NCBI RefSeq assembly: GCF_963853765.1
Contig: NC_088854.1
Coordinates: 23,312,001 to 23,376,000 of the forward strand
Length of the DNA: 64,000 bases
Reading direction: 5' to 3'
DNA from: Magallana gigas
Lineage: Eukaryota
This document shows positions 35,408-62,036 of the stretch, piece after piece. A program made the translations under genes and the position numbers. How positions within the stretch are numbered: position 1 is the first letter of the stretch; each line of letters begins with the position of its first letter. The notes below the pieces were generated by a model that was not told where the DNA came from, did no database searches, and was given only the letters and a program-made list of their open reading frames with translations.

Positions 35408-36993
35408 AATAAATCATATTCATTCATTCATTATTAGTTACCCGTTTTCTTTGATGAAAATGAGCGTGCGCGATTGACAACCCCACCTGGCTATTTTATT
35501 GCCAACTCTTCAATACCCAGTGCTGGATACGGAGCATGGACAATGACTGGAGTCAAAAAGTATACAGTACTTGGGGAATATGAGGGAGAGGAACATAAGA
35601 AAGAAGGGAACCAGCCTTACTCCTGGGTTGTGCGTATCTATTTCTGTATACATTTTACTTCATTTTTCCCAATGAAAGATTATAAATGAATCATAAGCAG
35701 ACAGTTATGGTTCGTATACAAAGATGTAATAATAAGTACGTTACATTACGTAAAATGTACATTATTTTTAAGTTTTGTGATCTCTTGAACTCGCTAATGG
35801 CGTTTCCAAAGTTACTTTGATAAAAATATTAGCTAGTTAGTATAATTTTGTGTTGACATGATACCTTGAAGTTTTAAAATAATGTACTTATACAGCGATC
35901 GATATTGCTCATTTGATGCAGAGAGTTTAAGAACAGTTTCATAAAATGTTTTAATATTGTTTTGATTTTTTTAATTATTTCGGGATTTTTTTTAATTTTC
36001 AAGCTTTACTTTTCAAGAACATTAAATTCAGAATTTTTTAGCTTACTCAGTAACTTATTTAAATTCATTTTATTTTTCAAGTCCTAGACCACCAAGCTTG
36101 ATGCTGGTTATTTATGTGAAATGAATCAGTAGGAATAAAGAGAGGGATATGTCAACGATATTGTTCTTTGAAACATTTGATAAAACTATCTATATACATA
36201 GTTTTACAACTTAAATATAACCAATATCATAAACGAATACGTATTAATACAGTTTTCTACTGTTTTAGTCGAAATTTTGCTCCTTAATTAAATAATATGG
36301 TTTTGATCATGCTAACAATGTAACTTGTTTGATAATGTTACTTGTCGTTAACAAGTATTTTTTCATCTACAATGCATCTAATATACAAGATATATGAAGA
36401 TAAAGAAAGGAAAAAGAAACATTATATAGACGCATCTTCTCCCGCCAAAAGTAACTGGTTGCGGTATGTCAACTGTGCAAGGAATGTGCGCGAAGAAAAC
36501 GTGTTTTCATTTGGTTGTGACGGCCTAGTATTTTATATGACGACAAAAAACGTGGAGCCCAACACAGAGTTACTGACCTGGTATGGAGAAAATGATGGAC
36601 GTTTCTTGGGAATAAAGAGATTGCATCCAGGTTGTTATCTACATGTAATTAAAAAAAAATCAGACACATATATACATGCATAAACGCAATGTTTTTATTT
36701 ATTTAATCCATTTCTTCTATGTTTCAGCAAGCGAAATGAATCTGAAATCAGCTTCTCACATCCGTCTGAGTTATATGCCTAAAGATTCATTAAAAGATTA
36801 TCTTAAATATCATCAAAACTGGTTTTCAAATAAATATGATAAAAAGAGCAACAAAACATATCATGGAATTATAGACACTTATGAGGATGGGACGTGGACA
36901 ATGCAGCGGGAAGGAAATTACACGTATTATACTGGGGAACAGGGACTTCTAGTTCCATTTGTGTGTGAACATGAACCACTGGAAAAAGAATAA
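34194..36993 (+). CDS. Signal peptide + split C-type lectin-like domain with inserted PR/SET domain, copy A, 8 exons, 368 aa
   Basis: Exons 34194-34248 (MNQQCIAYFILIVGIFTT), 34328-34516 (VFPIHVVTLKCKAGFENIAKWCF..EICEKTGGNMVLLD..YIQ), 34681-34721, 34875-34929, 35014-35081 (YCKSYK..FYVPNAK), 35438-35629 (RARLTTPPG..SSIPSAGYGAW..LGEYEG..YSWV), 36390-36630 (YIDASSPAKSNWLRYVNCARN..VFYMT..ELLTWYG), 36728-36993 (..HIRL..NW..WTM..PFVCE). All GT-AG, phases 1,1,0,1,0,0,1; 1107 nt, frame closed. Confidence 0.92.
35361..35402. repeat. (CT)n microsatellite in intron 5 of copy A
   Basis: About 20 CT units with one interruption. Confidence 0.95.
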
Positions 36994-38801
36994 GATCAAA
37001 TATGTTATTTAAATTAGTGCAATGGTTTATGTAGATAAATACCTGTGTAAAGTATTAGATATACATACAATATAACTTAGATAAAAGGATTGTTATTCCT
37101 ATCTCAATCTGATTATTTTTATGGTGAAGGATATTACAAGGTACGTTCTCATGTGCCCCTCGTTAATATCTTGCGTGCTTAACTATTGATAATCATTTAC
37201 CCTCTGATGGCGGTCGTTTTATTTTCTTATGATACAAATCAGTCACTATTATATCAATATCTTGGGTACAAATAATCAATATCTTCTAGATTTTTCATTT
37301 ATGTAACGTTCTGAATGTTTATCTATTGAACGTGGTTCTAATTTCTAAAACTTTTACATTTTACCGACAGACTGACACTGAGACATGAAAAAAATATAAT
37401 TGCGAAAGTTGACAATTAAAAACAAAGTAAAAAAAAATATTTCGGCTGTGGCTCAAAGTATCGATTATAATCACTAAAATATTTAATGGGGGAGTCAATA
37501 AATAATGTCCAAATTTTAGTGAGTTAACCTCTAGAAAATCGTTAACCAAAATACTGTCAATCATACACGAAAGACTACAAGGTAACAATTTGGAATTTTA
37601 TCAGCCAAGAGGAGAAAAGAGCCTTAGTTCGCTGTAATGTTTATATATTTGCACTTTCGAAGGTGATATACAGTGAGTGAAGGGAAAGATCGATTTTAAC
37701 TACGGACTTCTGACATTCCTGTTCGTCTGGTAGGTACAATGTATGTCACTTTTTTTAGGGAGTGGTGTCATTTTTTGAATATGTGTTGCAAATTAATATA
37801 GAATGGCTAGTATTAGCAACAGATGCCAGAGAATTTTTCACATTGTTGTTGCAATATCTATTTGATGTGGCATTAACTTCTCAAAAGAAAAATGCAGATT
37901 GGGGTGTCAAAGGGAATATATTAAACGACAATTAAATAATATAGCTGAGAAGTGGATTTTATTTAGCTTTATATTTCATCGTTTGTGAACACACCCTCTT
38001 TTGTCATTGCGGCACAGTGATTTTAAACTAGTTCGGCATATATTTGATTAATTAGTGCTGATGAAGAAAATTATATCCGATTCCTCCTGTCAATAATACT
38101 GTCGCACATCAAATTTCACTTGCAATTCAAAAAAAAGTTCTGGAGATGAAAAAAGATGCGTTTTCAAACATTAATATAACCATTCAAATCAATATCAGTG
38201 GAGTCAACAAATAAATTTTTAGTAAGTCTAAAATCTAGTTACCTCGATAAAATCGTTAACTGAAATAAAAAGGGTTCGTATTTCTTTACTGGTTAACAAT
38301 TCTTTTGTGGTATTTTTAACGATCAGCCAAACATTGTTGTCAGCTGTCGAGTAATGTATTCAAGACTGGTGAGCACTATGTTATGTTTACGTTTGTTTAA
38401 TTTTCCTGTATAAAGCGTTTTTACGGATTAATTTCTTCTTGTTTGCTCTTTATGAGCACAAATAAACGGTATCTAGTGTTCGTCACATACTAAAACATTA
38501 TAAACAACATAAATGGAAAACTTAAAATAAAAAATATTTAGCTAACATCATTACCATGCTTCGAACCGTAAGAAATATGCATATTTCATGGCCAACAAAA
38601 AAATAGGTGGTTAAATTGTATTTTTTTTAGTATACATCGTTGTATTCAATTTATTTGTTCTTAAAAAGTGATTCAACGAAATAGACTTAAAAGTTAAAGT
38701 CTTTAGATATACAAATCCCAGTTTCAATGCAACTGTTTTACCGTTAAGAAATATCATTGTAAGAATCGGCTTTATTCTTTTATACAGGATCTTCAGATAA
38801 A

Positions 38802-40014
38802 ATGACACAGCAATCATCTGCATTATATATCTTTATAGTTACAATCGTCACCTCAGGTAAATATATTTTTTTTTCATTTTTTGAAATGTAATCAAACCAA
38901 AATGAATTAAGTTTGTTAATTACTTTTACAGTTTTCACGATCAATGTTGCCAATGTGAAATGCAAAGCCGGTTTTGAAAACGTCGGACAATGGTGTTTTT
39001 CATTTTATCTTGAGAGCAAATCCTTGTCAGACTCCATTGAGATTTGCACAAAAGCCGGTGGCAACATGGTTCTAATGGACGAATACAGGAAGATAGAGNN
39101 NNNNNNNNNNNNNNNNNNNNNNNNNNNNNNNNNNNNNNNNNNNNNNNNNNNNNNNNNNNNNNNNNNNNNNNNNNNNNNNNNNNNNNNNNNNNNNNNNNNN
39201 NNNNNNNNNNNNNNNNNNNNNNNNNNNNNNNNNNNNNNNNNNNAAATTCGTACTCAAAAAATTACTTATCTTATACGGTTTAGTTTTCATTTCGACTTTT
39301 AGATCGATCAGAATGTGATCCTTATACGTAAAAAAAGAAAGAAAATTAAATGCTTAATGTTACAGTGTGCACTAATACATGGACAAAGGGTTAGATATTA
39401 TGACGAATATCGAATACATGTATCGATAATATCCTTTTAAGATGAAGAATTGATTCCAGTAGGTCTAGTTAAAGTAAACTAAATGGTTACTAATTTTCTT
39501 TACACACTGTCGATGGTTAGATATTGAGATACTGATTTTTTTTTTCTCTTCTGTTTCATTTGTTCATTTTTTTAACTACAGCAACAAAATGCCTATTTAC
39601 TTATTTAAATTAATAAAAAACTTTATATGTTCAATTCTTAAATATTTTTCTCCATGATGTTTTTTTTTCCAAATGCTTACTAATGTATACTAATGAATTG
39701 TCACTTAATAATTTTTTGTAGAAAAAAGACTCATACATAAACTGACTGTGCAAAACAGAGAGGTAATTTGAATGTAACAGTATACTATTGTATATATATA
39801 TATATCACAAATCACAAATTATTTGCCCATTATTATGGTTGATAATATTCATAAGATTATGTATATGACTTTCCAAATTAATGTTTTTATATGCATTAAC
39901 TTTTACACGACTGGTTTTTTTTCTGTTAAATGAATTTCTAACTAATTTTAAAGGCATTGATAAAATCTTATCAGGAAATTCGTGAAGTAACAACATATCA
40001 GGAAAATTGTGAGT

Positions 40015-40091
<77 letters not shown>

Positions 40092-41845
40092 CACAGCTTT
40101 CAATTTTTGTCTCTTTTATGACTGTTAATATCACTTTGACCAAAAATATATAGTAACATATATTTAGATTGCAACACCTACAAGACAAATAGATTGTTAA
40201 AACCTGCAGAAGAATTTTACATCCCAAACGCCAAGGTAGAATTCATTCTATTTTTAAACAAATTACAGGTGGAAAAAAACTAAATTCGTAATTTCAAAGG
40301 TATAAAAAAATCATGACACATCAATTGTTTGATATGAAAAAAAGCATTGATACCAAGTTTGGTTGCTTAGAACTTGCTTAAATAGTTTGAAATAAAACAA
40401 TATTTTCTGAATGAAATTTGACCCCATTTGACATCACCATAGAAACACATAGAGAACACTTCTGTAAAGTTTGATAGAAAAAAATTTAAATTACAGCTTC
40501 CGATTAACTTTAATGGAAATGGACGTGCGAGATTGACAACTCCAAGTGGATTTTTCATTGCAAAGTCATCAATTCCTAGCGCCGGATACGGAGCATGGAC
40601 TAAGACTAAAGTCCGGAAGTATACAGTCTTAGGAGAATATGAGGGAGAGGAACATAAGATAGAAGGGAATAGTCCATATTCCTGGGTTGTATGTACATAT
40701 ATAAGTATTTATATTGTATGCATTTCGGGTCAGGTTTTGAATGCTTTAGAGATCTGATAATATTTCGGTTTATGTGGTTAATCGAGCCTTATAGGATTAT
40801 GAACATTTATTAACTTTATTATGTTATAGGTTTAAGATTAACAAAATATCGATATTAATTAATATTATTAAGATGCTTAAGCATTGGCTTAAACTGACAC
40901 GTTAACTTCATTTATCCATCTTTAACAAGGCATTAATAACATTATTTCTCTTTTTTAAATTTGTAAAGACTTGATACAGTTTAAATCGGTGCTTTGAGTT
41001 TTATTATGTTATTGATTGTTAATCCATTTTTCAAATGTGCAGATATATGAAGATAAGAAAAAGGAAAAGAGGCATTTTATAGATGCTTCCTCTCCCGCCA
41101 AAAGTAACTGGTTGCGGTATATCAACTGCGCAAGAAATATGTGGGAAGAAAACGTGTACTCCTTTGTATGTGATAACTTAGTATTTTACATGACAACAAA
41201 AGAGGTGGAACCCAACACAGAGTTACTGACATGGTATGGACGGAACGACGGATTGATGCTAGGGATTACAAAATTACATCCAGGTAGAATGTGTTTTCAT
41301 AAATATAAGTAGGCACAACTTCTCGTGGTTATAGAGTTCAAGGTTTCAAGGATACTTAATTTCGTGGCTAATGATCCTATCAATACACTATTGTTTCCGT
41401 TATAATTGCTCTTCAATGGACATTTATTTCGTGGGTTAACTAAGTAAAATCTACGCAAAAATATAATATTAAATGAAAACTGACGAAGCCACAGCATCTG
41501 TGACAATATATGCACAACGAAAACTTATTTAATCGATCACAAACACATGATATTATGTGTCATTTTTTTCTCATTTCAGCGAGTGAGTTGGACTTGAATT
41601 CAACATTTTATATTCGATTGAGTTATATGCCTCAGGATTTAAAAAAAAACGATCTCAAATACCACCAAAACTGGTTTTCAAATAAACACGATATAAAGGA
41701 CAATAAAATACAGTATGGCATTCTTGACTCATATCACGATGGAGCGTGGAAAATTCAGCGGGAAAATAATTATACGTATTATACAGGTGAAGACGGATTT
41801 TCAGTTCCATTTGTATGTGAACATCAACCACTTGATGTTAAGTAA
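38802..41845 (+). CDS. CTLD-PR/SET chimeric gene, copy B, 8 exons (end of exon 2 hidden in a gap)
   Basis: Exons 38802-38856, 38932-(gap at 39099), 39722-39762, 39954-40008, 40168-40235, 40497-40688, 41043-41283, 41580-41845. Every fully visible exon has the same length and phase as in copy A; no stops in visible exons. Confidence 0.88.
39099..39243. other. Assembly gap (145 N)
   Basis: Run of N. Confidence 1.
40019..40088. repeat. (TA)n microsatellite in intron 4 of copy B
   Basis: About 35 TA units. Confidence 0.98.
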
Positions 41846-43121: not shown

Positions 43122-43123
<2 letters not shown>

Positions 43124-43481: not shown

Positions 43482-44000
43482 CTTTTTGGGAGTTGATTTT
43501 AATCAACTCTCCTATGCACTTGCTCGGGCAAAGCGAAAGTAAAACAGTGTTTGGACCTAAGCACAATTCAATACCGCTGACAACACTTAGTTCTTGAAAA
43601 TAATCGATAAATTCGCTATGTATTCTGAAGCATTGTTTTTCAAGAAAACTTATTTATTAATACCATGAAAATAGTAAGATTTTAAATTGTACAAACAGTT
43701 TAGATTTTTTTTAAAGTCGTATGTATTCCTACGCCAGAGTTCGATGTAGTCTCGTTCAACCAGACGTTTGGCTGCCTCCGTTAATATCCGACAAAACAGA
43801 GTCTCTCTTGCTTGTCGGATATGAACGGAGACAGCCGAGCGTTTGGTTGAACAAGACAAGAGTTTAACCTTGCCTGGATCCATACCATTTCTCAGAAATA
43901 TTTCGATTACTGATACTTCTTGCCATGCAAAATCACATATCGTTGATTTTGAATAAATGATAATCGATAAAATCAACTCCCGTCAGTACGTCAGTACTTT
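43482..44000 (+). mobile_element. HINE-like element, copy 2
   Basis: TTTTT-GGGAGTTGATTTTA (43488-43501)-ATCAACTCTCC ... TAAAATCAACTCCC (43968-43981)-GTC-AGTACGTCAGTACT-TT. Inverted near-identical match to 18109-18631. Confidence 0.72.
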
Positions 44001-44533
44001 GATTTTAACTGCTGGTTCTCATATTGGGTTTCGTTCCATCAGCGCGAGCCCAATCGATTTCTTTTGGAAATAAAGAAAATACTTCAGTGGATATAAATAT
44101 GTCAAGCTAAGAGGTTGAAATGAAACATTAGTTATAAAAAAAAACAAAAAGAGTTATTGATCTCGCAACAAATGGGTTATGTGCATTTAAAAGAATTACG
44201 TCAAAAGCGTATTATGTGCGTTCTTTAACATTATATTAATAAAAATTAAATGTTTCTTAGACAACGGAGAAATAAATAATTCTTCAATGTATGATTATCA
44301 TTTTTGTTACCTTATGACTTCCATCAGTTATTGGCATTTCAATTAATCATCAATAACAATTTCGCAAACTATCGATTTTTTAAATGTTTCCTATATACAT
44401 TAAAATTCCCAAGCACTAATTATTTGCCACCATACAGACTGAAACTGTTAAAGCCTCCATAATATCAATAAATCAATGTTTGTTGGGTTTTTACATTACT
44501 TTTAATGTGAAAATATTTTGGTAAAGAGGCAAT

Positions 44534-47500
44534 ATGGGAACTTTCTCTGAAAATTTAATCTTCATTGCTGGTAATATAATGCTGTTGTAAATTTTTGTCA
44601 GTCAGAATTGTTGCTGGTTAAATGATGATGCACAGTTTTAGTTTGTTTCAGTTTTAGTCAACTTTATAAGAAATACACTTAGTGAAGATGAATTTATACG
44701 ACTTGGAATATGGTGCTTTTCTTTTCACCTGGAATATGAACCACGTCATACATCCGAGAAAATATGTTCAGAAAAAGGCGGTCAATTGATTATGTTGGAT
44801 TCAGATAAGAAAATAGCAGTTGTTAGGAAATATATAAAAGGTAATTTTATGTAAATACAAAATATGTTTATAGGTCGGTATATATATGATAAACACACAA
44901 AAAAGGAAACGAATTCAAATTTCAAAAATATTGTGAAATCAGTTTAAGAAAAGTGTGTTTTTTTAATTTTTGTTAAAGATATCAGCATGTCTACATTTCC
45001 CTTCCATCAAAAAAGCGCTATTCTCACTCTGTCAGACATCAACAGTCACAAATATTTCGTGCATTGACAAAACAGGTATCCTTTGTGTGAGAATTGTTTT
45101 TGAATTCCAATCAGTTTGAAATCAAAAGTTTTTGAAACTTGTGTGTGCAAAGAAATCTTACGAATTTTGATACAGTCTTGATGTGGTCATAAATAAGAAC
45201 ATTCTACAAGTCCTCGTTTTGGAATTTTGCCAAATCAGAAGATGGCCATATTAAACATGTACATCATCTTTCTCTCCAATAACTTGTATTTTGTATTATG
45301 GTGCACATCATGGTCAGTGACTTCAATGAGAGACATTTTATTTCATTTCCCAAGCACCATATGACGGTGCCTAAAACAGGTATATACCAAGACATTCGAT
45401 ATCAGAAAAAAACCATCGGTTTGAATATGAAACAAGTATTTTCATTATACTTTCATGTTAAATACTGAAATCTGATTGGTTTAGACCCAGTTGATAATCC
45501 TTTCTATTACCCTCAGCGTTAGCAATACACTTAGCAACGGGTAACACAACGAAATATTACATGTGCGTACATTATGCGCGTAGGTTTGCCGTAGAATTCG
45601 CGTCATTTCTATGTAAATACAATAAATTATCTCTTAAATTAAAACATTCACTATAATAAAATAAATAGTGCCTGTTTTGGAAGGTAACAGTTGAAATTGA
45701 CACCCCTCGATAAACATTGTCAACCTTCGCTTCGCGTCGGTTGACAATCGTTTTCTCGGGGTGTCAATTTCACTTGTTACCCTCCCAAATAGGCACTATT
45801 TATATGATACTGCATAGAGGATGTGAATGTCAAAGTAAGTTTACTGCTCAGTAAAAAAAACCCCTTTAACTTAATAACCAATCAAATTTAACCTTTGATC
45901 GAAAAGAAATTGCTTTTTATAATGACTTCTTTATCCATTACGTAGTACTTTACTCATGATGTTTCTTTTGATAGCTAGAGGATTCACATCAGAGCTGAAT
46001 CTACAAAAAAGACAGGTACAAACGCAATATCATCATTGTAGTTATGGTTTTCTGTTATGTTGATTTATTACTTATTCAAGACTACAGTTTATCTTGGGTT
46101 GATTTGTAGATTTTACTGAATTCATATCACAGAATTCAAGACACGGTTAACTATGGAGAAAGGTGTTAGTATATCTGATAATTTCTTTATCCCCCACCTC
46201 TGTCTAATAAAATAATTCAATCAAAGTGTTTTATCATTGGTAAACTAGATTAAGAGTGTACAATAATATATAAGGTAAAATTAATGCGTTGAATTTTATT
46301 TTTGCAGTTTGTCGTATGTACAAGAATTATAGAATGGCAAAACCAAGCAAAGTTACTTATATCCCAAACAAAAAGGTATTACTCTGTAAGAGTAAACATG
46401 ATAAAAATGTTGTTTTTTATTTATAGAATATGGAGAATACCTACTTTCATAAAATAAGCAGTATTGTTTTATAATTATATTGTATAACTAGAAATATGTC
46501 TTTACTTAACAATCATTCATAGCTCCGGGTAAATTTTCTTGAAAATCAACGAGCAAACTTGACAACGCCAACTGGTTTTGTCGTTGAACCTTCCTCTATT
46601 ACTGGTGCGGGATTGGGAGCCTGGGCAAAGAAAAGGGTCCGCATGTATACAGTTATAGGGGAATATGAAGGAGAAGAACATAGGAATGAAGAATTCATTT
46701 CACATTATCAATGGACCGTACGTGTCATTCAGAGGCTGGGTGGTCGTGGCCATTATAAGACAATATAAATCTCCTTAAAAAGAAGAGCTCTGTATAAAAA
46801 TATAGGAAAACATTCCAACTTTACAGTTAAAATTTAAGGATTTTTTATTCACGAAAAAAAAACAGTTTACAGCTTGAAAAATCATTCTTTTTTAATTTAA
46901 GGTAGATCTGTTGTTACTTTTGTTGAGCACCCAGCCTCCTAAAATAAAATTTAATCAGATATACTTAAACCATATACGAACCAATGATCAGTAGTATAAC
47001 TGATTGAAATAGCAAGTAAGTGTTGCAGGTCTTTCGAATTAGCTATTCATATTTTCAAATACTGCATTATTTTACGGTTTAGTTGAGACGGTTATCTTAT
47101 TTGTTAAGGCATTTGAGCTTCGAAAAATTTAAGAGAGGGTATGTAAAGAATAATGAATTACCAATCTTGGCCTGAAATTAAAATTGCATTTTGAAAGATT
47201 TTTCGTGCAAAGAAAAGTATCATTGTTGTTTTTAAACATTTAGATCCCTGAGATTGAGCAGGCCATGAGCTATTACATAGACGCAGCTTCTCCCGCCAAA
47301 AGTAACTGGCTCCGGTACGTCAACTGCGCCAGAAATGTGCATGAAGAAAATTTGAAGCCAATTATTTGTGACGGTTTAGTATTTTACATGACGTCAAAGG
47401 ACGTAGAACCAGACACAGAGCTGCTGGTTTGGTATGGTACAGAGTATGGAAAACATCTCGGAATCACGCGCATGCATCCTAGTAAGTATGGTCGGTTATT

Positions 47501-48124
47501 TTCAAATATCTCTTTTTTTTATAAGGATTTTAAGGTAGATTATGCCACACTCACAACTATAATCAGTTATGATTTGATGGTCATTATACATGTACGTATA
47601 TTCATTACGGCACTATACACTAAGGAGAAAAAAAAACTGCGTTCTTGGCTATATTTTGTAGAGGGTTTTTAATGCGACAATGATAAACAAAAATGCACTG
47701 TAGCCCATCTTTTACGTTTGGAAAGTAAAGTGTTCAACAATTTTTTCATGAATTTCTAATAGAATTATGTAATATGTGCTATGCCGTGTGCATGTATATC
47801 AAATGTTATTTGTAAATTTTATAATATTTCATAGGCGATGAATTAGATTTGAAGTCCACTTTCTATATCCGGGTATATTACTCACCTCAAGCTCCAGACT
47901 CGACGTTGTATTCCTTCAACAGTCATATTTCAAACAGACCGAACAGCTCGGAGACAAACAATGGAATGTTGAATAAAACATACTTTGGGATGCTGGATTC
48001 CTACCGTGGTGGAATGTGGAAATTGGTTCTTGAGAAAAATTATTCTTATTTTAGTGACGATGGGCTTCATTTTCCATTTATCTGCGAATATAACCAAAAC
48101 ATATGTCTCAATTCTCATAATTAG
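44534..48124 (+). CDS. CTLD-PR/SET chimeric gene, copy C, 8 exons, 370 aa
   Basis: Exons 44534-44570, 44652-44840 (..IWCFSF..KICSEKGGQLIMLD), 45975-46015, 46110-46164, 46308-46375, 46523-46717, 47244-47481, 47835-48124 (..FYIRV..WKL..FPFICE). Same phases as copy A; 1113 nt, frame closed. The start codon is less certain than in A, D and E. Confidence 0.88.
45661..45803. repeat. Long imperfect palindrome (~65-bp arms) in intron 2 of copy C, probably part of a non-autonomous element
   Basis: ATAAATAGTGCCT..GGTAAC..GAAATTGACACCCC..ATTGTCAACC / loop TTCGCTTCGCGTC / GGTTGACAAT..GGGGTGTCAATTTC..GTTACC..AGGCACTATTTAT. Confidence 0.85.
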
Positions 48125-48720
48125 GAAACATTATTATTGTACATAGTGTTTTGTTTTGAATTATTTATGATTGTAAAACATATATATCAATGTACCTAAT
48201 GTGAACAAATCTAGTATCAAATTTCTCCTCTCTCTTCTCTCTCTCTCGTAGTTTTCTTTGTTTCTTTTTTTCTTTATATTTGTGAAGATAGTAAATACAA
48301 ACTGGCAATAAAGAGGTTAATTTTATTTGGAATTATTTTTTGGCCATTTGAATACAGCGTCCTGGAAAAAGCGTTTACGCTATTATATCGAGGGTTTTTT
48401 CACATTTAACACTTCACCAAAGATGAGGACAAAAATGTGAAAAATGTCTAGCATTTAGAAGGCTACATGGTCAACAAATTAAACATTCGATCCGCCATTA
48501 ATTTTAATTTATGATTTGTTTCGCTTGAAACTATTAAGTAAGTTTTCTAAATTATTATTCATATCAGTAATTATCATTAAAATGATTGCAATGGTTGGTG
48601 ATTAAATAGAATCTTTAAAAATTGTCATTTATATTATTTTAGAGTCTAAAGATTTAAAATTCCTCTACAAAGATGGGATACTTGCTGGAAAACAAAATGA
48701 AGTAATAAAATTATTCTTTA

Positions 48721-49840
48721 CGGAAGCGTATTAGGGCCACTCTATGTACAGATTTTTTTTTTAAATTCCAACTTTAAAGTTGGAATTTCCAACTTTAATC
48801 TTGGAATTTCCAACTTTAATCTTGGAATTTCCAACTATAAAGTTAGAATTTCCAACTTCCAACTTTAATCTTGGAATTTCCAACTTAAATCTTGGAATTT
48901 CCAACTTTTATCTTGGAATTTCCAACTTTAAAGTTGATTTTTCCAACTTTAAATTTTGAATTCCAACTTAAATCCTGGAATTTCCAACTTTAATCTTGGA
49001 ATTTTCAACTTTAAAGTTGATTTTTCCAACTTTAAAGTTGGAAGTTCCAACTTTTATCTTGGAATTTCCAACTTTAATCTTGGAATTTCCAACTTTCATG
49101 TTGATTTTTCCAACTTTAAAGTTGCAAATTCCAACTCAAATCTTGGAATTTCCAACTTTAATCTTGGAATTTCCAACTTTAATCTTGGAATTTCCAACTT
49201 TAATCTTGGAATTCAATTCAACATATATATTCATTGTTCAAGATTATCATACTACCGTATATGTATGTGTTAACTGAAAATTATTTGTTGAAAATTGCAG
49301 AATAGATTATTTTTTATATATAATCACTTTCCTAAATGTTTTTCACTACTATGCTTCATAATGCTTAATCCTTTTAATTCTTTTATTTATTGAGGTTTTT
49401 TTTAAAATTTATTTTATATGTATATGATACAATCAAGCAACCTTTTATACACATATATATATATATTGATTATGACATAGTTATTGTTTTCATGGAATTC
49501 AAAAAATAAAATTGAAATTATAAAAATGACATGTTCTATTATTTCCAGTGAGTTCGAGTTGTTGTATTATTATATTGGGTTCTTCTTGAAAGCGAATGAG
49601 CTCCCCCATTCTTTTTATGAGCAAAGCCTAATTCACACTGAACAAAAAATCATAGTATATATCTATCTATCTATATATATAAATATAATAAAAATCAACT
49701 TTAAAGTTGATTTTTACAACTTTAAAGCTGGAAATTCCAAGATTAAAGTTGGAAAATTCAAGAATAAAGTTGGAAATTCCAACTTTTAAGTTGGAAGTTT
49801 ACAGAAAAAAAAAATACAAAGTGGCACTAATACGCTTCCG
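48721..49840. mobile_element. TA-flanked foldback-like non-autonomous DNA transposon with internal 21-bp tandem array
   Basis: TA|CGGAAGCGTATTAGGGCCACT ... AGTGGCACTAATACGCTTCCG|TA (21-bp TIR, 1 mismatch). About 20 units of TTGGAATTTCCAACTTTAATC at 48765-49215, and a shorter inverted array at 49690-49800. Confidence 0.88.
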
Positions 49841-51026: not shown

Positions 51027-53715
51027 ATGATCAACAAATTTTGTTTTTTCGTTTTCATTTTAGGTAAATATTATGATGGATAGAAAGCTTGTTTTAATGT
51101 TATTAAAATTGTCAACTGCATATAAGTGTATTTTATCTAATTTTACAGTTTTACCATTTTCTGTCAAAAGTGAAAAGTGCAAAGTAGGCTATGATAGTGC
51201 GGCAGAATGGTGTTTTATGCTTCAACTGCAAGGAAAATCTGCGCTCGGGGCAGCAGAGATTTGTAATAAAACTGGTGGCAGAATAGCCTTACTGGACAGC
51301 TATAAAAAGATAGAGATTCTTCGGACCTATATTAACGGTAAAGTATTAAATTCTTTAATGCTTATTTATTAGTTTGTTTGTTTGGGTTTTAGTTTTGTTT
51401 TGGGTGGGGTTTTTTTATTATTTTGTTTTTCATTTTCATTAGTTTTGAGGGCGGGTAGATTGTTTGTTTTTTATTGAATATAATAAGCTAACGATTTTTA
51501 CTAAGAGTTTTGAGTTATATTCGTGTAATAATTCAATGGACGTTTATACATCACTAGTGATTAAAGGGGAAATCCCTGAATTTAGTTTGACTTTGATTCA
51601 AGTATAAATTATATGTATAATGTTTAAGTTTTAAAAATTATAATTCATAAATGATATTTAGTGAAATTTATTAAAATGTACTCGTAAATTTTAATTCCTG
51701 ACAGTTTAATCAATGTGCTTTAACTCTTCAACGTAAATTTTTAACTCTTATCTCTGTATTTAGAGAAAAAAGAATTTTTACTGGCTTCGTCGATTAAAAC
51801 CCAGGAGGTACGTACTAAATCGTTTCTATGTGTAGCACGAGCGAGTATTAACATTGAGTAATTTGAATGATTTTTAAGATAACCCACTCCTGAATGTTGT
51901 TGAATCATGAATTTTTTGAGAAGTGTATCATTGAAATATTTAGACAAAACATAGTTAAAAAATACAAATAAAATGGGGGGGGGGGGGGGGGGGGTCAGTA
52001 TTCATCCCTCAGAATTATGGCCCGTTTAATTTGACCTTTTGCACTTAAAACGGAATGGAATTTCAGCCTGATTAGGATTAGTTGTCAGTATTTTTGATTA
52101 GGCAAACTTATTTCTTCAAATATCGTTTTCAATTATGCACAATGGTCACACTGAATAGATATATCATAAAATATATCATAAACTTTTTTGTGATCTTTTT
52201 GCAATATCTTTAATAGTTACAATTTGAATATCAAGAATTTTATAAGATATATACAGTTTGCCAAGATATGTATTCAGTATCATTTTGACATAATAAAACA
52301 TGGGGGTCAGTGATGTCAAATTTTAGGTATAGGGCTTCAAACGTAAAATTCTAGAAAAATTTCCTAAAAAAATTCAGATATTTAATATAAATTTGCGTGA
52401 TTTTATGCCAAACGTATATCACTCTCTCAAGATTTAATTTTGTACATGTCACACAGAACCTATAGAATATGTTACAAACCCATCAAATGTTTAAAATGTT
52501 GATAATGAATAAATTTATAAAGAAAGGAAAAGTATTTTGAACATCTATAAAATTGCTTATTTCTGTCATTTTTGTCTAAAAAACCTTCCACACGAAAAAA
52601 TAGTTCCCCAGAAAATGTGTTTGTTTCTTTCATTCAAATAGATTTTCTTTATGAATGCTATGTAATTATAAGCTATTAATCTTTCTGTGAATATTAAATA
52701 AATGAAATCATTTTCATTTTAAATATAATGATCATCTGCGTAATGAAATCAAAACGTGAGGAGTGAGATACCGTAATCAAAGTTTTTATCTATTTTTTCA
52801 GCAGGACTTAATGATGTCATACCGTAGAATAAGAGACATGAGTGATTATGCAGATAGATGTACGTATTTGTAATATTTGAAATCCCAACTTACATATACA
52901 AATGCTAGCATAATGTAATCCATCTAGCAATCTACCAATTCAAATGTATCATATTGTGAGTGTCACCCTGCATTTTTTTATTTATCTATTTGCAGATTGT
53001 AAGACTTACAAAAGGTTTAAGCTGTTCTGGTCAACAAGGAAGTTGTATATACCAAACAGGGAGGTTTGTAAGAATAAATCGTATCATTAAATGAACAATG
53101 CCTATTTGCATCTTGAGTTTTGATTTGTTACTTCTGTTGAATCATTGTTTATTAGTAGTAAATTCCTGTATAGCTTCCTATCCAATTTGATGCAAACGAA
53201 CGTGCAAATAGAACAACACCGGCTGGGTTCATCATTAAAACCTCGTCTATTCCTGGTGCGGGACTTGGGGCATGGACAACATCAAAAGTTCCCATGTTTA
53301 CAGTTCTGGGGGAGTATGAAGGAGAGGAGCACAAGCACGAGGGGGATACGTCGTACTCCTGGATTGTAAGTTGGCTGGGGCATTGACTCCTGGTTAGTGT
53401 GGATAATTTTCATCAAAATATAGTTGTCTTAGTTTTGTTTTTTGATTGCACGTTTGCATAACTGATTTTAGAAATTCAAACTGAAAAGTACACGTATGTG
53501 CATATGCACACGTAAGCACATTTACATCATTTTACAATTTGATATTAAAGTGTTGATCTTAGATATCTCTTTTTTTCTTTCAATTCCACTTTTTTTATCC
53601 TGAACGAAATGTAAGTTTTCACTTGAAGATATAACTAAATGATGATGGTTTTATATATGAACACCCACAATAGTACAGGAGCATCGCCGCTTTACCACTT
53701 CGTATTTATCATGAG

Positions 53716-53803
<88 letters not shown>

Positions 53804-54577
53804 CTAGTAGCTTCCTGCAGGAATGTCGTAATTTTAAAATGAAAGTTTGTATTTTGTGATATTCTATTTCGTAAGTATATGCTAATTGGTAATTTAAATT
53901 AACGTTGAGTATATGACGACCAGAATTCAGTGATTTATTGGTGTTATTTGTCTCATACTAAACAGGTATTTGAGGATGACGAAGAGGAACAAATGCACTT
54001 TATTGACGCGTCTTCTCTCGCCAAAAGTAACTGGCTACGTTACGTCAATTGTGCTAGAAATGTGCATGAAGAAAATGTAAAGCCAATAATATGTGATGGG
54101 TTAGTATTTTACATGGCGACCAAAGATGTCGGGCCCAACACAGAACTATTGACTTGGTATGGAGAAAACGATGGACGGTCGCTTGGAATCACTCGCAGAC
54201 ACCCAGGTACATGTATTATAGGACAATACGTTTATAGCTGTATATAACCTGAACAACAAAAGAAAACTCTTTTATTTAAGTTGACAGTTGCATTTCTAAG
54301 AAACGTAGATTTTTCCTCTTAAAAAATAAAATTTATGATCCCCCGCCTTCTTTTTCTCATTGTAGCTCGTGATTTGGAACTCCGATCAACCAATTATGTG
54401 CGAGTAAAATACAAAAATCCATGTAACCCGGATAATCACTTTGTCCTCTTCGATCCGTTTAACAAGAAAGGGCGGCATATTCAACGAGAGTATGACTACT
54501 CTTATTACACTGGTACAGCGGGACTTCTTCTACCGTTTGTGTGTGAACATAGCCCTGTAGATACCGGTATACACTGA
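51027..54577 (+). CDS. CTLD-PR/SET chimeric gene, copy D, 8 exons, 345 aa
   Basis: Exons 51027-51063 and 51149-51337 (MINKFCFFVFILVLPFSVKS-EKCKVGY..EWCF..EICNKTGG), 51764-51807, 52805-52859, 52996-53063, 53174-53365, 53966-54206, 54366-54577 (short CTLD C-half ending PFVCE). 1038 nt, frame closed. Confidence 0.9.
53719..53802. repeat. (TA)n microsatellite in intron 6 of copy D
   Basis: About 42 TA units. Confidence 0.98.
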
Positions 54578-55199: not shown

Positions 55200-56240
55200 T
55201 TTGGCCATGACAAAGCTTATTGTTTCATATTTGAAAAAAAAATCTCTGTCGATGGATGACATGTATTGCAACAATGCATTCTTCAATGAAGTTACATTTA
55301 GTTCATATCCCAAATCAAACAAATGTATACAATCTGTGTACTTGAAATATCAAGATTCTTAACCACAAATGTAGCAAGAGCTGAACTTATTCTAGTTCTC
55401 CAATTTTCTCTATCTTTTTTCGAAAAACATAAAAACCAATTTCTACGTGGCAAGATGTGACCATTAATTAATTGTCGTTGGAAACAGGTTTGTTACGATA
55501 GACACAGTCAACTTCATGTACTTTTGTAGACCCCTCAGTGTATTATGAGGGTTGCCAATATCATTGCAACCACAATGTATTACTAAAAGTGTTGGGTGTC
55601 TTTTATTCTGCTTTAGCATTTCGTTGATTGTCTTTTGGTTGTTGACTGAGACCAAATCATACCCCTAATTCCATACCAAAATATTTTTTTGTTAGTCCCA
55701 AGTTGTCATTGGTTTTTTGTTACGCATATTTCTGAGCCCATTGAATTATAAATGATCACCCGATCATGATATACAATATGATGTTGAATAGCTGATGCAA
55801 GTTCTTTCGTTAAGTTAACAACATTTTTTTCTTTTAATGCAATGGGTACATGAGCCCCAGATGATGATACTATACTATAGAAATGTTCGGGGTTTTTGAT
55901 GTCAAACAAACAATCTGTACCTATATTGGTGCTAAATCCTGCTACCAAAGGCTCGACTGTATTCTAGTTAATGTTGACTGATCCGATATGGTACTTGCCC
56001 TTTCTAGATCAGATAAACAGATGGTTGGACCCCAGGATCTGGCAGACTTTTGGCTTGTTTTATAACTTCTACCTGAAGTCTCGGTAGATGCGACTGAGGA
56101 AGGACCGCTGGAGAATGATATCACAACGTTTGCCACCCGTGTAGACGCCCGGGAGACTACAACAGCTCCCCTTGTCGAAGGTCTGGCATAAGGGCTCTTG
56201 GACTTAGACGTCCTTTTGTTTGCTCTCAACACCTCATGAT
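55200..56240 (-). mobile_element. Decayed DIRS/Ngaro-like retroelement relic: gag 5' part joined to an SGNH-hydrolase ORF
   Basis: Gag-like MLRANKRTSKSKSPYARPSTR.. and SSSGAHVPIALKEK (56232-55830). SGNH blocks MIG*SFIIQWAQKYA (~55770), IFWYGIRGMIW, PTLLVIHCGCNDIG (~55570), WSHILPR, DCIHL (~55320), with several stops and frameshifts. No RT, RNase H or recombinase seen. Confidence 0.65.
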
Positions 56241-58221
56241 ATAAGAAGTTTGAGAAAGAATTACATGTAGTAGGCTACTTTGTAATTATACTATTTTGTT
56301 TACTAAATTAATAATGCTTAAATATACAACAAATAGTTATATTTTTATTCAATTTCATGTATTCATAATTTACCTCTTTAATCTTGGATGTTTTGGATAT
56401 TTTTTTTGGAGACGAATTCATACCACCTATCAACTTTGGGCTATTAAGTGGGAAAAGGAAGAAGCAACTGCCCGGTCATAAAGATGTAATAAATAAGAGT
56501 TATGGATCTTGCAACAATGACAGAACACACAATTGTGCTTCAGATAACCTTTGTTTATCCAGAGATGCTAAACCCTATTATTCGCACATTTGTGTTTAAA
56601 TGCAATGGGGTTTTTTTTGGTAGTTGGAATTGTATTTTAGACATCAAACAGTCCCAAATAAAGTAGAATATGAAAAAAATATGATCGGAACGTCAGATGA
56701 CGTTCGAGGTTTTTCCATACCCTAAACGAAGAGATGTACACGGTTTAAAAAAAAATGAAAGCTTCGAAAAACTTCATGTAACTTAAAATTCTCGAACAAT
56801 TGTGATCAAATAGCCAAGTGGTATATAGAGCCTTTTTGACCTAGTGAAAGGTACTAGAGACTGTTATATATTAGATGTAGATAGGGTATTTTAAATTGTT
56901 TGAACGTTGCTGGCTCTGTGTAGACAAAACCTGTTTTTAAAATTGGGTAACAAGAATACTTTTTCATCAAATGGAATAAAACTTCATATGTCAATAAAAA
57001 TGCATGTTTGTGCATAAATCATTCAATGTGTTAGTTTTAAAGGCTTTCGTGAAAAATAAATGAAAAACAGCGACATTGTCTACTTACGATCAACCCTCAT
57101 ACGTCAATTTGTTCTTCATTTTTTCGTTGGATTCTGGGAAATCAATCTAGAAATTATACGACAAATTAGATGACTTGTCAAATTAAAAATTTTTGATGAA
57201 AGAAGATTAACAAACAAATTTTTTTCTACGTAATTCTAACAGGGTTTTACCGATGAAAAATGTGTTTAGAAGGAGTTGTTGTCTTATTAATGTTACGATT
57301 TTTTAGGATAATATTTAATTCTTCGTTTTCTTGGGTTTCAGACTGGATTTTGGTTTACTGATGAGTTTTGAGTGAAAATTCCACCAGTAGAAATCCATTC
57401 TGAAATCCAAGAAAAAAAAAGAACAGAACGGGTTAGGATTTAATTAGCAAACTATCACTGCATTGTTTATTTATTCATCATAAGAAAAAAATATCTATTG
57501 ATGAGAGTCAGACTCCTTACTTTGGCTTCCGGATTTAAAGTATTTTGGTTTCAATACAGTTGAATTAATCAATGATTGAGATGGTTGACGGTTTGTTATT
57601 ATCAATTTTTCATTACCTAATCTACCGGTATTCAATTTGTATTATCTTTCGTACAAGAAATGAATTCAAATATTTAGAATGTACTTAGATACTAGATCAC
57701 ATGAGATAACTGTTATAAAATTCAATTATTTTTTATTTAATCTATGGGAATACAAACGTACACACATACACGTGTGTAAACAAATGATCGGTTCATACAT
57801 CGATGGAGTTACAGCGTTTGTAACTAAAGAACCCAATCAATACTCAGTACCTTATGAAGTATAATTTTTCAAGGTAACTGTTGTTGAATTTGATATTGTA
57901 ATAATTGTTGTTTGATTGTATCCCTAACCTTTATTTCAATAAAAATGGAATATTTCTCGCTAAAAACTGTTATTTGTAAATCGAAGCAGTCTTTGTTAAC
58001 AAATTTTATAACGCAGCTGTGTCCAAAGTTTATTGATTACCATAAAAGATTTCCTTAAAATTAAATCAATGTCTTTAGTGTGTTTCAATGTATTCACTCT
58101 TGTGTCTATACTAATACGTGTATTTGAAACAAGAGCAGTGTTTGACTGAAATTGATTTTCTTTACTATAAAGGATGTCAATCGACACTGTCCGAATGAGC
58201 AATCTTTTTTAAGGATCTGTT

Positions 58222-61200
58222 ATGAAGACCTTAAATTGTATACTTTTTTACTTTCTTATCAAAATAATAGGTAGGGCTTGGTTTTTGCAAATCCTATTTT
58301 ACGAGTCCTTCGAAAATTATGTTCATTCTTATGCATTGCTGTTTTAAACAGAAGGTAGAAGATGCAAGAAAGGTTTTGACAATATCGGGAACTGGTGTTT
58401 CTCTTTTCATCCGAATGGTGCATCTTTTGTAAAATCTAGTGAGATATGTGGCGAGATCGGAGGCGATTTGGTGGTATTAGATTCACTAGAGAAGGAAGCC
58501 ATGCTGACAGACTATATAGAAGGTTGGTCAAGCAACGAAGCATTTTGACGTAAAATAATTTATTCATTCTTATTTTCATTTTACTTAAAAATTACATAAT
58601 TTTTCTTATTTATTCATCATAATTCGTTACTTGTTAGACAGGTAAATATTTCAGTAAGAAGACTGGATGGTCAACAAATTAACCATCAGATCTGAACTTT
58701 TGAGATATGCTTTTTTTTTGCTGTAGATTTTTAGCTCAACGGGAAATTCGGGTTCACGGCTAGACAATCCGAATTTTCCGAGGAGCTACAAGTATGCAGC
58801 TATTTTTTGTTTACATACAAACTATTAATGATTTAGTAGGGAAAAAATCCATATTTCTTAAATTTAAAATATGGGTACTTTTCTGTATTATCAAGTATTT
58901 TTAATTGAGTTATTCTTCTAAAGGACATCGTTAAAGTCTAAAAATGGCCACGACCATCGAGTCCTCTTATTTATTTGTAAGATCTATATGCCCATATTTA
59001 TACTGCAAACATTGTTTGATTTGTAGCTAAAGGCTTCACATACAAGACGACAGTTTCTAATCGAGAGGTGCTGAATCAGTTTCGTTGGTGGTATTGAACT
59101 GTAATGAAAATGAATGTCAAATTATTTAAAAAACCATATGGTACATTATGTATTTTATTTTACTTCTTTCTCTTTTAATTTCAGGATTTGTTAAAATCTC
59201 ACCATAGATTAAAAGTTGCTGATAAACACGCTGAAAGATGTACGTACACAATAAAATGAATCGATTTCAGAAATCGATAACTCATGTCTCCATTCCCTGT
59301 ATTCGATTAAACAATGGTTGAGAAAAGTCTTGTTATAATTAGTTAAATGATATAAGAAATCATGTATTTTTACTTTTTAATTTCTTAGATTGTGACTTCT
59401 ATAAAAAGTTTAGATGGATTAAACCTACAAAAGAATTGTATATTCCCAATGCTGAGGTAATATTGTAAAAGAGTGAAGCTAATGTACTTTTTTTCAAAAT
59501 TCTATTTCATTTCTCAATGAAATTTCTCGTAGGGGTCTGGACTGGGTTTTACAAAAGAACTTACGACAAAGTCACATGGAATGATCTTTGACGAACAAAA
59601 TATATATAAAACCATTTATTTACAACTATTTTGATTTCCATTATTAAATTTTACAGCCAGAATAATAAAATAATGGTTAGTTTGGGATTAAATAGCATTT
59701 AAAAAAAGTTCTTTTGTAAAACGCAGCCCGAGTCGATTAACTAATGTCCTTTTATGTGAACTGTGTCTATAACGATTTGTCAACTCTGAATTGATAAACA
59801 ATACCTATCCAGAAAAATGGTGTACCCTATATGCAATATTATGTGTGTAAATGACTAAATTCAACAGCTAATACATTTTTCATTAATTATCAAAATATTT
59901 AAATCCAAGTGATATGCAAATCTCTGATATATGTCCAATTGATCTGCAAAACAACTTCGAATTCCTATCTTAAAAACTGAAGGAGGGGTTATCCGTACAC
60001 CAGGGGTAGCCCATTTGCAGTGCTCTGAGAAAAAATGACTAAGTTTAACATCTGGTATTTTTTTTTTCATAAATTATCAAAAATCAAAATCCAAGAAGCA
60101 TGCATGTTTCTGATATATGTCAAATTGATTTGCAAAACATCATGATCACCTTCCTATCTTGAAAATTGTCGGAGGAGTTATCCGTACAATACTGGAGTAA
60201 CCTATATGCAATATTCTGCAAGAAAATTTTCAAGTTTAACAGCTGGTATTTTTTCATAAATATATCAAAAATCATAATTCAAGTAATATACACATCTCTG
60301 ATATACATGTGTATGTACAATTGATCAGCAAAACAACAACTTCCTATCTTGAAAACTGTAGGAGGGGTTATCCGTACAATAGGGATGCCCTTTTAGCAGC
60401 CGCCCGCCCGCCATTTTTACCATTTCATTTATTTTCCTTTGGAAAGCCCGGTTAATAAAATTATTTTAACTGACCTTCATTGTTAAATATTTTCTTGAAA
60501 TGAATTTTACAACTCTGTTATCTTCAAACATAGATCCCAGTGGATTTCGATGAGCTACAGAGGGCCAATTTGACCACGCCCCCTGGTTTCTCGGTCAAGC
60601 TCTCATCTATTCCGGGAGCAGGCCTTGGGGCGTGGACTTCGACACACCTTCCCATCAACAATGTGTTAGGGGTGTATGATGGGGAGGAGTTCATAGACGA
60701 CGGGGAATATATGTATGGATGGATGGTAAGTATCTACATTGTATATGAGGGGCGGCTTGGTGCTGTCCATCTAATTCTTCCTCTCTTCACAAACCGCAGT
60801 GTCTTGTTCTAAACAGCTTTGAAACATAATTATTGACGAAGAGAAATGGTTTTTTTTTTCAAACATGACCTTCAGACTTATTCTAGTAATGGAAAGTTCC
60901 CCAAAAGAATATGTATGGGAAGCTCTTTCAGAATCTTCTTTTTAAGATTGATGCAATTTGATTGACTGTAGATACCATTTCAAACCTTGATCTCTTGATA
61001 ATATGTAGTTTCAAGTTTGTTCACAGCATAACAACCGGTCGACAAATAAAGCGCATTTTTTTTCAAATATTCTTCTCAGAAACTGTGATGTTACAATTAT
61101 TAATCAAGCATTGCCAGAATCGTATGGACTGAATTTCATTCAATAAAGGGTCACTTGAGGCGTTATTTATCCACATTTACATGCTAGGGAAAAATACAGG

Positions 61201-62036
61201 AAAAAATGTTACCCAAAGATAACCCCCGGTTTTTCAAAGGAATTTCCCAAAAATTAATTTATAAACTGTTACTCATTTGACCGATAATACCAATGCAGTG
61301 TATTCTGGGTTATACGTCTCTTCGTATCAAAACCCAGGAAACTTAGTACCTTGAAACTCACATTAAAAAATATTTTGTAGCTAGACAACGTTGATGGTGA
61401 ATTGGCAACCCATTTTGTGGACGCAGGTTCTCCCGCCAAAGGCAACTGGTTAAGATACGTCAACTGCGCCAGAAATGAGCAGGAAGAAAATATCAATGTC
61501 GTCTTTTGTGAAGATTTAGTCTTTTACATTACATCAAAAGACATTGCGCCAAATACTGAGTTGCTTATGTGGTACGGTACTTGGTATGGAAATCTTCTTG
61601 GAATCAAAAGGGTGCACCCAGGTTATTCATTTTGAAGAATTGGTAAAATGGTGTATAAGTCTTAATGTTTAGTGAAATTTTGCCGAATGTGCACTTAATT
61701 GATAAGATCAATCGTTTCTTTGATTAATAAACAGATGACGATTTGGACCTTGATGACGTAATCTACATCCGGGTCAGCAGCTTGAGAAAAACAAGAGACG
61801 GAGACTACTGTTTCCATGACAACACTACTGTGACGTACACAAACTGGATTCCTAAAAGGTTCAATAAAACTCGAGAGCGAGAGTACTGGCAACATGTTTA
61901 CGATCCCTTTGGCTTGTTACTCGCATATTACGACGGAAAATGGAAGTGGGTGTTCGAAAAGGATTACTCTTACTTCACTGGTGATACTGGTCTACTACTC
62001 CCATTTGTTTGTGAAGATAGGTCACATATTAATTGA
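58222..62036 (+). CDS. CTLD-PR/SET chimeric gene, copy E, 8 exons, 372 aa
   Basis: Exons 58222-58270 and 58352-58522 (MKTLNCILFYFLIKIIEG-RRCKKGFDNIGNWCF..EICGEIGGDLVVLDS), 59027-59067, 59185-59239, 59389-59456, 60534-60725, 61381-61621, 61735-62036 (YIRVSSLRKTRDGDYCFHDNTTVTYTNWIP..DGKWKW..LPFVCE). 1119 nt, frame closed. The C-half is the most canonical CTLD of the five. Confidence 0.92.
59790..60420. repeat. ~190-bp tandem array (3+ units) ending in CCGCCCGCCCGCC, in intron 5 of copy E; resembles satellite-carrying Helentron/HINE cores of bivalves
   Basis: CTATCTT(A/G)AAAA(C/T)TG..GGAGG(G/A)GTTATCCGTACA recurs with GGAGG at 59982, 60171 and 60361. Confidence 0.75.

Follow-up and report, generated by a model that had tools for sequence, protein, structure and literature searches.

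We describe a family of oyster genes in which a PR/SET domain, closest in sequence to that of the recombination-hotspot protein PRDM9, is nested, in the structure models, as an insert within one C-type lectin-like fold. Five such genes, here called copies A to E, lie in tandem on the + strand of a 64,000-nucleotide stretch of contig NC_088854.1 of the Pacific oyster, Magallana (Crassostrea) gigas (RefSeq assembly GCF_963853765.1, positions 23,312,001 to 23,376,000 of the forward strand); this whole stretch is our window, and positions are counted from its first letter. The PR/SET domain of each gene is encoded by two exons and retains the three tyrosines on which PRDM9 depends for lysine methylation. 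The SET insert is also the most constrained part of the protein.

PRDM9-like SET residues in five tandem genes

A six-frame motif scan of the window placed GEYEG at 35573, 40632, 46658 and 53309 in copies A to D and its counterpart GVYDG at 60669 in copy E. The RY[VI]NCA motif starts at 36462, 41115, 47313, 54038 and 61453 (RYINCA in copy B, RYVNCA in the other four), VFYM (copies A to D) or VFYI (copy E) at 36528, 41181, 47379, 54104 and 61519, and LLxWYG, intact in all five, at 36570, 41223, 47421, 54146 and 61561. Neither RY[VI]NCA nor LLxWYG occurs again in any frame across the 64 kb. The ten SET exons contain no stop and no frameshift, and every junction carries AG/GT. A first-pass annotation of this DNA had listed these motifs, together with IPxAGxG, as kept in every copy; the tyrosine motifs, RY(V/I)NCA and LLxWYG are, but IPxAGxG is restricted to copies A, B, D and E, and copy C reads ITGAGLG, a change in the cofactor motifs limited to the Pro before AGxG.

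PRDM9 was the top match in the Protein Data Bank (PDB) for both SET exons (phmmer, E values of 4.5e-16 and 7.8e-05). The three tyrosines align with chain positions 82, 147 and 163 of structure 4ijd, corresponding to Y276, Y341 and Y357 provided that residue 195 is the first of that chain, and alignments to 6nm4 and 4c1q give the same equivalence, so that the correspondence with human PRDM9 proposed in the first-pass annotation is upheld for all five copies. Baker et al. 2017 (PMC5519329), citing Wu et al. 2013, state that Y276, Y341 and Y357 mediate the methyltransferase activity of PRDM9, and the isolated PR domain (residues 195-385) is active on its own (PMC4002121). Partial PRDM9 orthologues were the only ones with substitutions at these tyrosines, and the zinc-finger array is missing from most of the mammalian genes concerned (Baker et al., PMC5519329). 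Because partial, finger-less PRDM9 orthologues commonly lose the tyrosines, their retention in a finger-less oyster family is meaningful.

Membership of the PR/SET superfamily is clear from the Pfam models. The proteins mapped to copies B, A and D (P0153, P0180 and P0199) score 97-103 bits against the PR model PF21549 (gathering cut-off 27) and 32-37 bits against the SET model PF00856 (cut-off 22.4), and exon 7 alone reaches 81.5 bits with the PR model. The SET cofactor motifs (GxG, the NH/NC Asn and ELx(F/W)Y) are all present: in the numbering of P0032, the most divergent family member, A165, G168, N227, E259, L260, Y264 and G265 are invariant. The three tyrosines do not vary in the five copies or in 13 family proteins, and an alignment of those 13 proteins, drawn from four subfamilies, has 29 invariant columns among the ~137 of the SET domain, including the three tyrosines, the NCA Asn, the A and G of AGxG, and EL..YG. 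By hypergeometric arithmetic, the chance that the key sites would all be invariant is ~0.009 for three sites and 0.002 for four.

These proteins are nonetheless not PRDM9 orthologues as these are recognized, by KRAB and SSXRD domains, a C2H2 array and a pre-SET zinc knuckle; they have none of these and end instead in a lectin half. No zinc finger, KRAB or SSXRD domain was detected in P0153, P0180 or P0199, in which Pfam places only the PR and SET models above cut-off, in agreement with the earlier description of a protein lacking zinc fingers and a post-SET finger. The family has cysteines of its own within this region. In nine family proteins, C115 and C243 of P0153 (copy B exons 5 and 7, window ~40170 and ~41169) show no variation; when 13 proteins are aligned, this still holds at C243, and C115 is only nearly invariant. 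C243 faces a non-Cys residue in PRDM9. The two might form a family-specific disulfide tying the pre-SET helix to the SET sheet.

A lectin-like fold around the SET domain

RefSeq proteins matching the window were collected by an exhaustive HMMER search with an exon-7 profile, and the full-length ones fit frame-preserving eight-exon models for copies A, B, C and D. Exon 1 encodes a hydrophobic N-terminus, exon 2 a first lectin half, exons 3 and 4 a helical linker, exon 5 the pre-SET region, exons 6 and 7 the PR/SET domain and exon 8 a second lectin half. The reading frame is unbroken through all exons; exon 2 closes and exon 8 opens in phase 1, which makes exons 3-7 a phase 1-1 block.

Copy A is covered by contigs from four public runs, each of a different study and guessed to be RNA, that lack its introns at GT..AG sites (34245/8 to 34325/8, 34721 to 34876, 34929 to 35014, 35629 to 36390 and 36627/30 to 36725/8), as expected of spliced transcripts. 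One contig of 608 nt spans exon 1 to exon 6, and others join exons 6-7 and 7-8. The seven joins of the eight-exon model are backed directly or by contig layout, the exon 2-3 join itself not having been seen. A nested or mis-joined gene is ruled out by the continuous frame, the phase 1-1 block and the single contigs that cross from lectin into SET exons, and a direct splice of exon 2 to exon 8, which would yield a plain lectin isoform, was not seen in the contigs of the four runs. In one contig of run X4 (depth 3.7) a single base is missing from copy A exon 8 at window 36913, either a frameshift allele or an assembly error. The copy C isoform that skips exon 6 would encode only the second half of the SET domain.

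The two flanking exons resemble the two ends of one domain. A profile of the first half (exon 2) matched multi-domain receptors in the PDB with an E value of 4e-15 and single domains, such as CD69 and Endo180 CRD2, with 1e-7 to 3e-7, the matches always covering lectin chain residues ~2-58. The profile of the second half (exon 8) was weaker (E 3e-05 to 2), and C-type lectin-domain proteins made up 16 of its 17 matches, at the W.DG..Y.NW and FVCE regions. The lectin disulfide cysteines C29, C40, C57 and C360 (P0153 numbering) are invariant in nine proteins, and the kept cysteines include the pair that would link helix 1, in the first half, to the last strand, in the second; the inner lectin disulfide is absent. 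No calcium or carbohydrate motif (EPN/QPD and WND) is visible in the alignment of the second half, and the split domain is probably lectin-like rather than a sugar-binding lectin. With the Pfam model Lectin_C (PF00059) the first half stays below threshold (14-21 bits against 22.6) and lectin-half exons taken singly give no match. A score below the cut-off is expected for a split domain, and annotation consequently overlooks the lectin, leaving RefSeq with PRDM names.

Structure models put the two halves back together. In the AlphaFold model of P0153 (predicted local distance difference test score, pLDDT, 68) lectins are the top structural matches, with a Z score of 12.1 and a root-mean-square deviation of 2.1 Å over 96 of 129 residues in the model range 28-362, and PR domains match residues ~106-284. 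The model of P0032 (pLDDT 79; ~90 in the SET part) matches SAM-bound PRDM9 (6nm4; SAM, S-adenosylmethionine) with Z 20.3 over 150 residues at 33% identity, and lectins with Z 11 (best 11.2, 126 of 131) over 126-128 residues spanning model residues 31-368. When the whole P0153 model was searched with Foldseek, the 50 best listed matches were all SET structures, and the lectin fold emerged only with an aligner independent of Foldseek. [quoted passage not shown]

A hydrophobic segment of ten residues, with a mean Kyte-Doolittle value of 2.6-3.4, lies within residues 5-18 in five of five copies, as judged by hydropathy alone, and P0032 and P0168, two other family members, begin with a positively charged n-region of the classic type. 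This N-terminus and the conserved disulfide cysteines together point to entry into the secretory pathway, and the proteins are probably secreted. The earlier statement that the protein appears to be exported fits the hydrophobic N-terminus of all five copies and the cysteines of extracellular type, both of them features read from sequence.

Constraint and family history

The SET exons are under purifying selection. By pairwise Nei-Gojobori estimates, the ratio of non-synonymous to synonymous substitution rates (dN/dS) between copies A and B stands at 0.15 for the SET exons and at 0.25 for the lectin exons, the only trustworthy ratio, as synonymous sites are saturated in most pairs (proportion of synonymous differences, pS, 0.6-0.9), which in turn indicates that the copies are old. 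Non-synonymous divergence is lower in the SET than in the lectin exons in ten of ten pairs (for example, 0.195 against 0.380 between A and D). At the key sites the codons have changed and the residues have not: Y341 is TAT in copy A and TAC in B, C and E, Y357 is TAT in copies A to D and TAC in E, and the NCA Asn (N320) is AAC in four copies and AAT in D, synonymous changes which indicate that the amino acids have been held. Variants among the copy A transcript contigs comprise three synonymous and no non-synonymous changes in the SET exons, and six and three, respectively, in the other exons. A dN/dS near 1 in exons 6-7, which the first-pass annotation had set out as a sign of a scaffold-only role, is thus not what the A-B pair shows. 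Its further suggestion, that methyltransferase activity or SAM binding may be under selection, is borne out as far as purifying selection on the SET exons and the pocket residues is concerned; catalysis or SAM binding as the target of that selection goes beyond these data.

The same exon set recurs in ~11 more genome copies on contig C1 and in one on contig C5, with the three tyrosines in every intact copy. One of the C1 copies is a pseudogene with stops within ELxWYG (locus L005, ~8691-9365; genome G000, contig C1, ~539.7 kb), the only decayed member seen. Besides M. gigas, the family is represented in M. angulata, Crassostrea virginica, Saccostrea cucullata, S. echinata and Ostrea edulis, with no other taxon among the matches listed; word-indexed searches, which are length-limited, returned Magallana, Crassostrea and Saccostrea only, and the best 150 matches of the exhaustive HMMER search added Ostrea. 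Across these four oyster genera and four subfamilies, the three tyrosines, the NCA Asn, the AGxG Gly and EL..YG are invariant.

In an unrooted tree of SET domains, 21 chimera domains fall on one side of a branch with a Shimodaira-Hasegawa-like approximate likelihood-ratio test (SH-aLRT) value of 97. The SET domain of copy E pairs with Saccostrea genes and that of the C5 copy with others, and together these groupings suggest that the family arose once and diversified before these genera split. Decapod proteins were considered as a sister group and not used, the SH-aLRT being 83 only and the tree unrooted. A separate, canonical oyster PRDM9-like gene without lectin halves lies on contig C9 and groups with Mytilus PRDM7_9; it apparently shares the position of the intron between the SET exons, an approximate placement taken from tblastn segment ends.

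Given this separate gene, and the lack of KRAB and finger domains in the chimeras, the RefSeq name 'PRDM9' is misleading. RefSeq labels family members PRDM9, PRDM7, PRDM1 or PRDM16, and work on the evolution of PRDM9 or on meiosis genes of the oyster could take them in by mistake. No link could be made between copies A to E and the oyster 'Prdm9' of PMC12111275 (LOC105330008). Among the papers searched, we found none with a lectin-SET architecture of this kind.

Table 1. Coordinates of the five lectin-SET genes and of the assembly gap in copy B (window positions)
Feature	Position	Strand	Remarks
Copy A gene, 8 exons	34194..36993	+	RefSeq XP_034299457.1 / XP_065931768.1 'PRDM9-like'; protein P0180 maps exon by exon
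Copy A first lectin half (N-half)	34328..34516	+	N-half profile matches PDB lectin domains
Copy A exon 6, SET part 1	35438..35629	+	IPSAGYG, GEYEG; Y276-equivalent codon 35579
Copy A exon 7, SET part 2	36390..36630	+	RYVNCA Asn 36471, VFYM Tyr 36534, LLTWYG Tyr 36582; ends in phase 1; PF21549 5e-23
Copy A exon 8, second lectin half	36728..36993	+	..PFVCE.. near end, then stop; exon 7-8 splice in 4/4 runs
Copy B gene	38802..41845	+	RefSeq XP_065931767.1 'PRDM9'; P0153 matches exons 1-8 exactly except residues 75-81 (in N gap)
Copy B exon 6, SET part 1	40497..40688	+	IPSAGYG, GEYEG; Tyr codon 40638
Copy B exon 7, SET part 2	41043..41283	+	RYINCA Asn 41124, VFYM Tyr 41187, LLTWYG Tyr 41235
Copy B exon 8, second lectin half	41580..41845	+	
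Copy C gene	44534..48124	+	RefSeq XP_065931769.1 'PR domain zinc finger protein 1 isoform X2'; P0213 matches only exons 1-5, 7 and 8
Copy C exon 6, SET part 1	46523..46717	+	ITGAGLG, GEYEG; Tyr codon 46664
Copy C exon 7, SET part 2	47244..47481	+	RYVNCA Asn 47322, VFYM Tyr 47385, LLVWYG Tyr 47433
Copy D gene	51027..54577	+	RefSeq XP_065931770.1 'PRDM9'; P0199 matches all eight exons exactly
Copy D exon 6, SET part 1	53174..53365	+	IPGAGLG, GEYEG; Tyr codon 53315
Copy D exon 7, SET part 2	53966..54206	+	RYVNCA Asn 54047, VFYM Tyr 54110, LLTWYG Tyr 54158
Copy E gene	58222..62036	+	Exons 1, 2, 5, 6, 7 and 8 located
Copy E exon 6, SET part 1	60534..60725	+	IPGAGLG, GVYDG; Tyr codon 60675
Copy E exon 7, SET part 2	61381..61621	+	RYVNCA Asn 61462, VFYI Tyr 61525, LLMWYG Tyr 61573
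Assembly gap, N run	39099-39243	.	Obscures copy B exon 2 at its 3' end, donor site included

On the left, the gap in copy B (Table 1) begins exactly at a codon boundary within exon 2, the exon for the first lectin half, and on the right it borders on intron; seven residues of XP_065931767.1 are missing from the window at this point. The gap lies ~1.4 kb upstream of the copy B SET exons, and the finding of the SET motifs is unaffected by it. A second assembly gap (153 N, 25670-25822) is away from the five copies.

The window also contains repeated sequence outside the exons. A unit present in three or four copies (2836-3532, 17814-19610, 25823-25949 and 28793-29524) carries conserved open reading frames on the - strand, for example ..FDGRDSNYLN.FNNSRI.. 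and ..HAPSGNGE.VL..WKT.HN.CDIVSG.CPCS.., with no Pfam match, and may represent a mobile element or a further family of tandem genes. Two inverted segments of 530 bp, 97% identical (18103-18631 and 43482-44006, the second adjoining copy C upstream), are probably a young transposable element. Copies C and D have between them a block of tandem repeats (48718-49221 and 49690-49810) with ~84-88% identity at several offsets and an inverted partner array ~0.5 kb downstream, and near-identical simple repeats occupy 40009-40140, in copy B intron 4-5, and 53650-53880, in the copy D intron between the SET exons.

A proposed working pocket and its rivals

On balance, we lean towards the view that these genes encode secretory-pathway or extracellular, lectin-scaffolded SET proteins with a working cofactor and lysine pocket. 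The five copies are intact, expressed members of a gene family that is oyster-specific (Ostreidae) in the databases searched. It most likely has a single origin, the arrival of SET exons from a PRDM9-like gene in an intron of phase 1 within a lectin gene, a route suggested by the fact that exons 3-7 jointly start and end in phase 1. The lectin scaffold, without a sugar site, may help the protein to fold, stabilize it or direct it, within the secretory pathway or extracellularly, whilst the SET pocket may still bind SAM and a lysine side chain and methylate lysines of non-histone proteins. The full form of this proposal is an oyster family of secreted or lumenal protein lysine methyltransferases, with a catalytically competent SET domain in a lectin-like scaffold and with substrates other than histones, located along the secretory pathway, in fluids or matrices outside the cell, or at the surface or in the interior of other cells; we put it forward tentatively, as possible rather than probable.

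Besides the saturation of synonymous sites described above, several observations weigh against an exported protein with an active pocket. Y357 has been described as the most conserved PR-domain residue generally (bioRxiv 10.64898/2026.09.07.749791), and both Y341 and Y357 are kept in three of four non-chimeric oyster PRDM paralogues of unestablished activity, with Y341F in one; the tyrosines are therefore necessary for catalysis, not diagnostic of it. The cysteines of the PRDM9 pre-SET zinc knuckle and the post-SET region are absent, and exon 5 has one conserved Cys (C115 of P0153). The lectin framework is not uniform, for the exon 2 alignment lacks the first lectin Cys in copy C, and in the alignment of second halves copy D is shortened and without the ..TY.NW.. 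segment. Some RefSeq isoforms also depart from the plan: those of 305 residues begin inside the first lectin half, without the signal segment, and XP_065931769.1 of copy C skips the in-frame exon 6 (46523-46717). Lastly, we know of no established supply of SAM in the secretory lumen or outside cells in animals.

Doubt about extracellular SAM speaks for the main rival, in which the SET domain is a pseudo-enzyme or binding module: its pocket would hold a lysine- or methyl-lysine peptide, SAM, S-adenosylhomocysteine (SAH, or AdoHcy) or a related nucleoside without turnover, and the protein would be a secreted receptor with two binding surfaces. Most PRDM PR domains keep much of the pocket without demonstrated activity, as the oyster paralogues keep Y341 and Y357, and the lectin context and tandem expansions resemble bivalve recognition-receptor families (PMC10140915). 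We nevertheless hold this reading to be doubtful, as the full catalytic and cofactor set is invariant over four subfamilies, beyond the fold core, and the nearest match in both sequence and structure is the active enzyme PRDM9 rather than an inactive PRDM. If the tyrosines and motifs merely held the PR fold, and the SET domain were an inert scaffold or spacer in the lectin, the lectin exons would be the functional part, and yet it is the SET exons that are the more constrained; an insert of 145 residues in ~20 paralogues of four genera is also hard to reconcile with inertness, and vertebrate relatives of PRDM9 without zinc fingers lose these tyrosines under relaxed function (PMC5519329). Such a structural role is accordingly unlikely, even though it would accommodate the general conservation of Y357, the tyrosines of the control paralogues and a RefSeq isoform of copy C that skips half of the domain.

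The remaining alternative concerns location. The hydrophobic segment could be a membrane anchor with a cytosolic lectin-SET body, or the short isoforms could be the main product, with intracellular (possibly chromatin) targets and cytosolic SAM. In copies A and B the hydrophobic segment is indeed preceded by no positive charge and followed by lysines, and the 305-residue isoforms lack the segment altogether. However, P0032 and P0168 carry positively charged n-regions, the four lectin disulfide cysteines, including the pair linking the halves, are invariant and fit an oxidising compartment, and the copy A transcript contigs include the exon 1-2 splice. We judge retention inside the cell very unlikely.

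Here the PRDM9 catalytic module, introns included, has been moved into an extracellular-type lectin fold behind a signal-like sequence, and the chimera was then duplicated to ~20 genes, which purifying selection has maintained in several genera of oysters. The family also illustrates cleanly how exon shuffling between compatible phases can insert one domain into another. To our knowledge, the SET-domain methyltransferases of animals are nuclear or cytosolic enzymes, and if the tentative proposal of secreted methyltransferases is true, this would be the first secreted one known from an animal. Activity would raise the matter of lysine methylation outside the cytosol in animals, with its substrate, its source of SAM and its role in immunity, shell matrix, adhesion or gamete biology; inactivity would make the family a clear example from nature of an enzyme's pocket turned to use in binding.

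Among known systems, the closest is the PR/SET domain of PRDM9 and PRDM7, a methyltransferase for H3K4 and H3K36. The oyster SET domain shares with it Y276, Y341, Y357, the NCA Asn, AGxG and ELLxWYG, and the insert extends to the ..LGIK end of the mouse crystal construct 4c1q, or beyond it; that structure was determined in the presence of peptide and AdoHcy. The zinc-finger array is likewise absent from primate PRDM7. Unlike PRDM9, the oyster proteins are without KRAB, SSXRD, a finger array, the pre-SET knuckle and the post-SET finger, are embedded in another domain after a signal-like segment, and add cysteines of their own (C115 and C243 of P0153). The scaffold, in turn, compares with bivalve and vertebrate C-type lectin-like domains (CTLDs) such as SPL-2 of Saxidomus, codakine, CD69 and the CTLDs of the mannose receptor, whose first and last halves are matched by the oyster halves; in the models the two oyster halves make up one such fold (Z 10-12). 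The Cys pair of the N-terminal hairpin and the pair joining helix 1 to the last strand are found in both; the oyster domain differs in being split, with helix 2 separated from strand 2 by an insert of ~200 residues.

A precedent for a SET domain acting away from the chromatin of its producer is provided by secreted bacterial SET-domain effectors such as Legionella LegAS4/RomA, and LegAS4 is among the structural matches (8swi, Z 11.9). These effectors differ in being bacterial and injected into host cells, in acting on host histones with host SAM, and in having no lectin scaffold, and the relationship is one of SET fold only. Phase 1-1 is the usual class of shuffled extracellular modules, and oyster exons 3-7 share it with the exon-shuffled mosaic proteins of the extracellular space. 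What sets the oyster family apart from those mosaics is the nature of the module, an enzyme domain of nuclear type, and the position of that module within the recipient domain rather than next to it.

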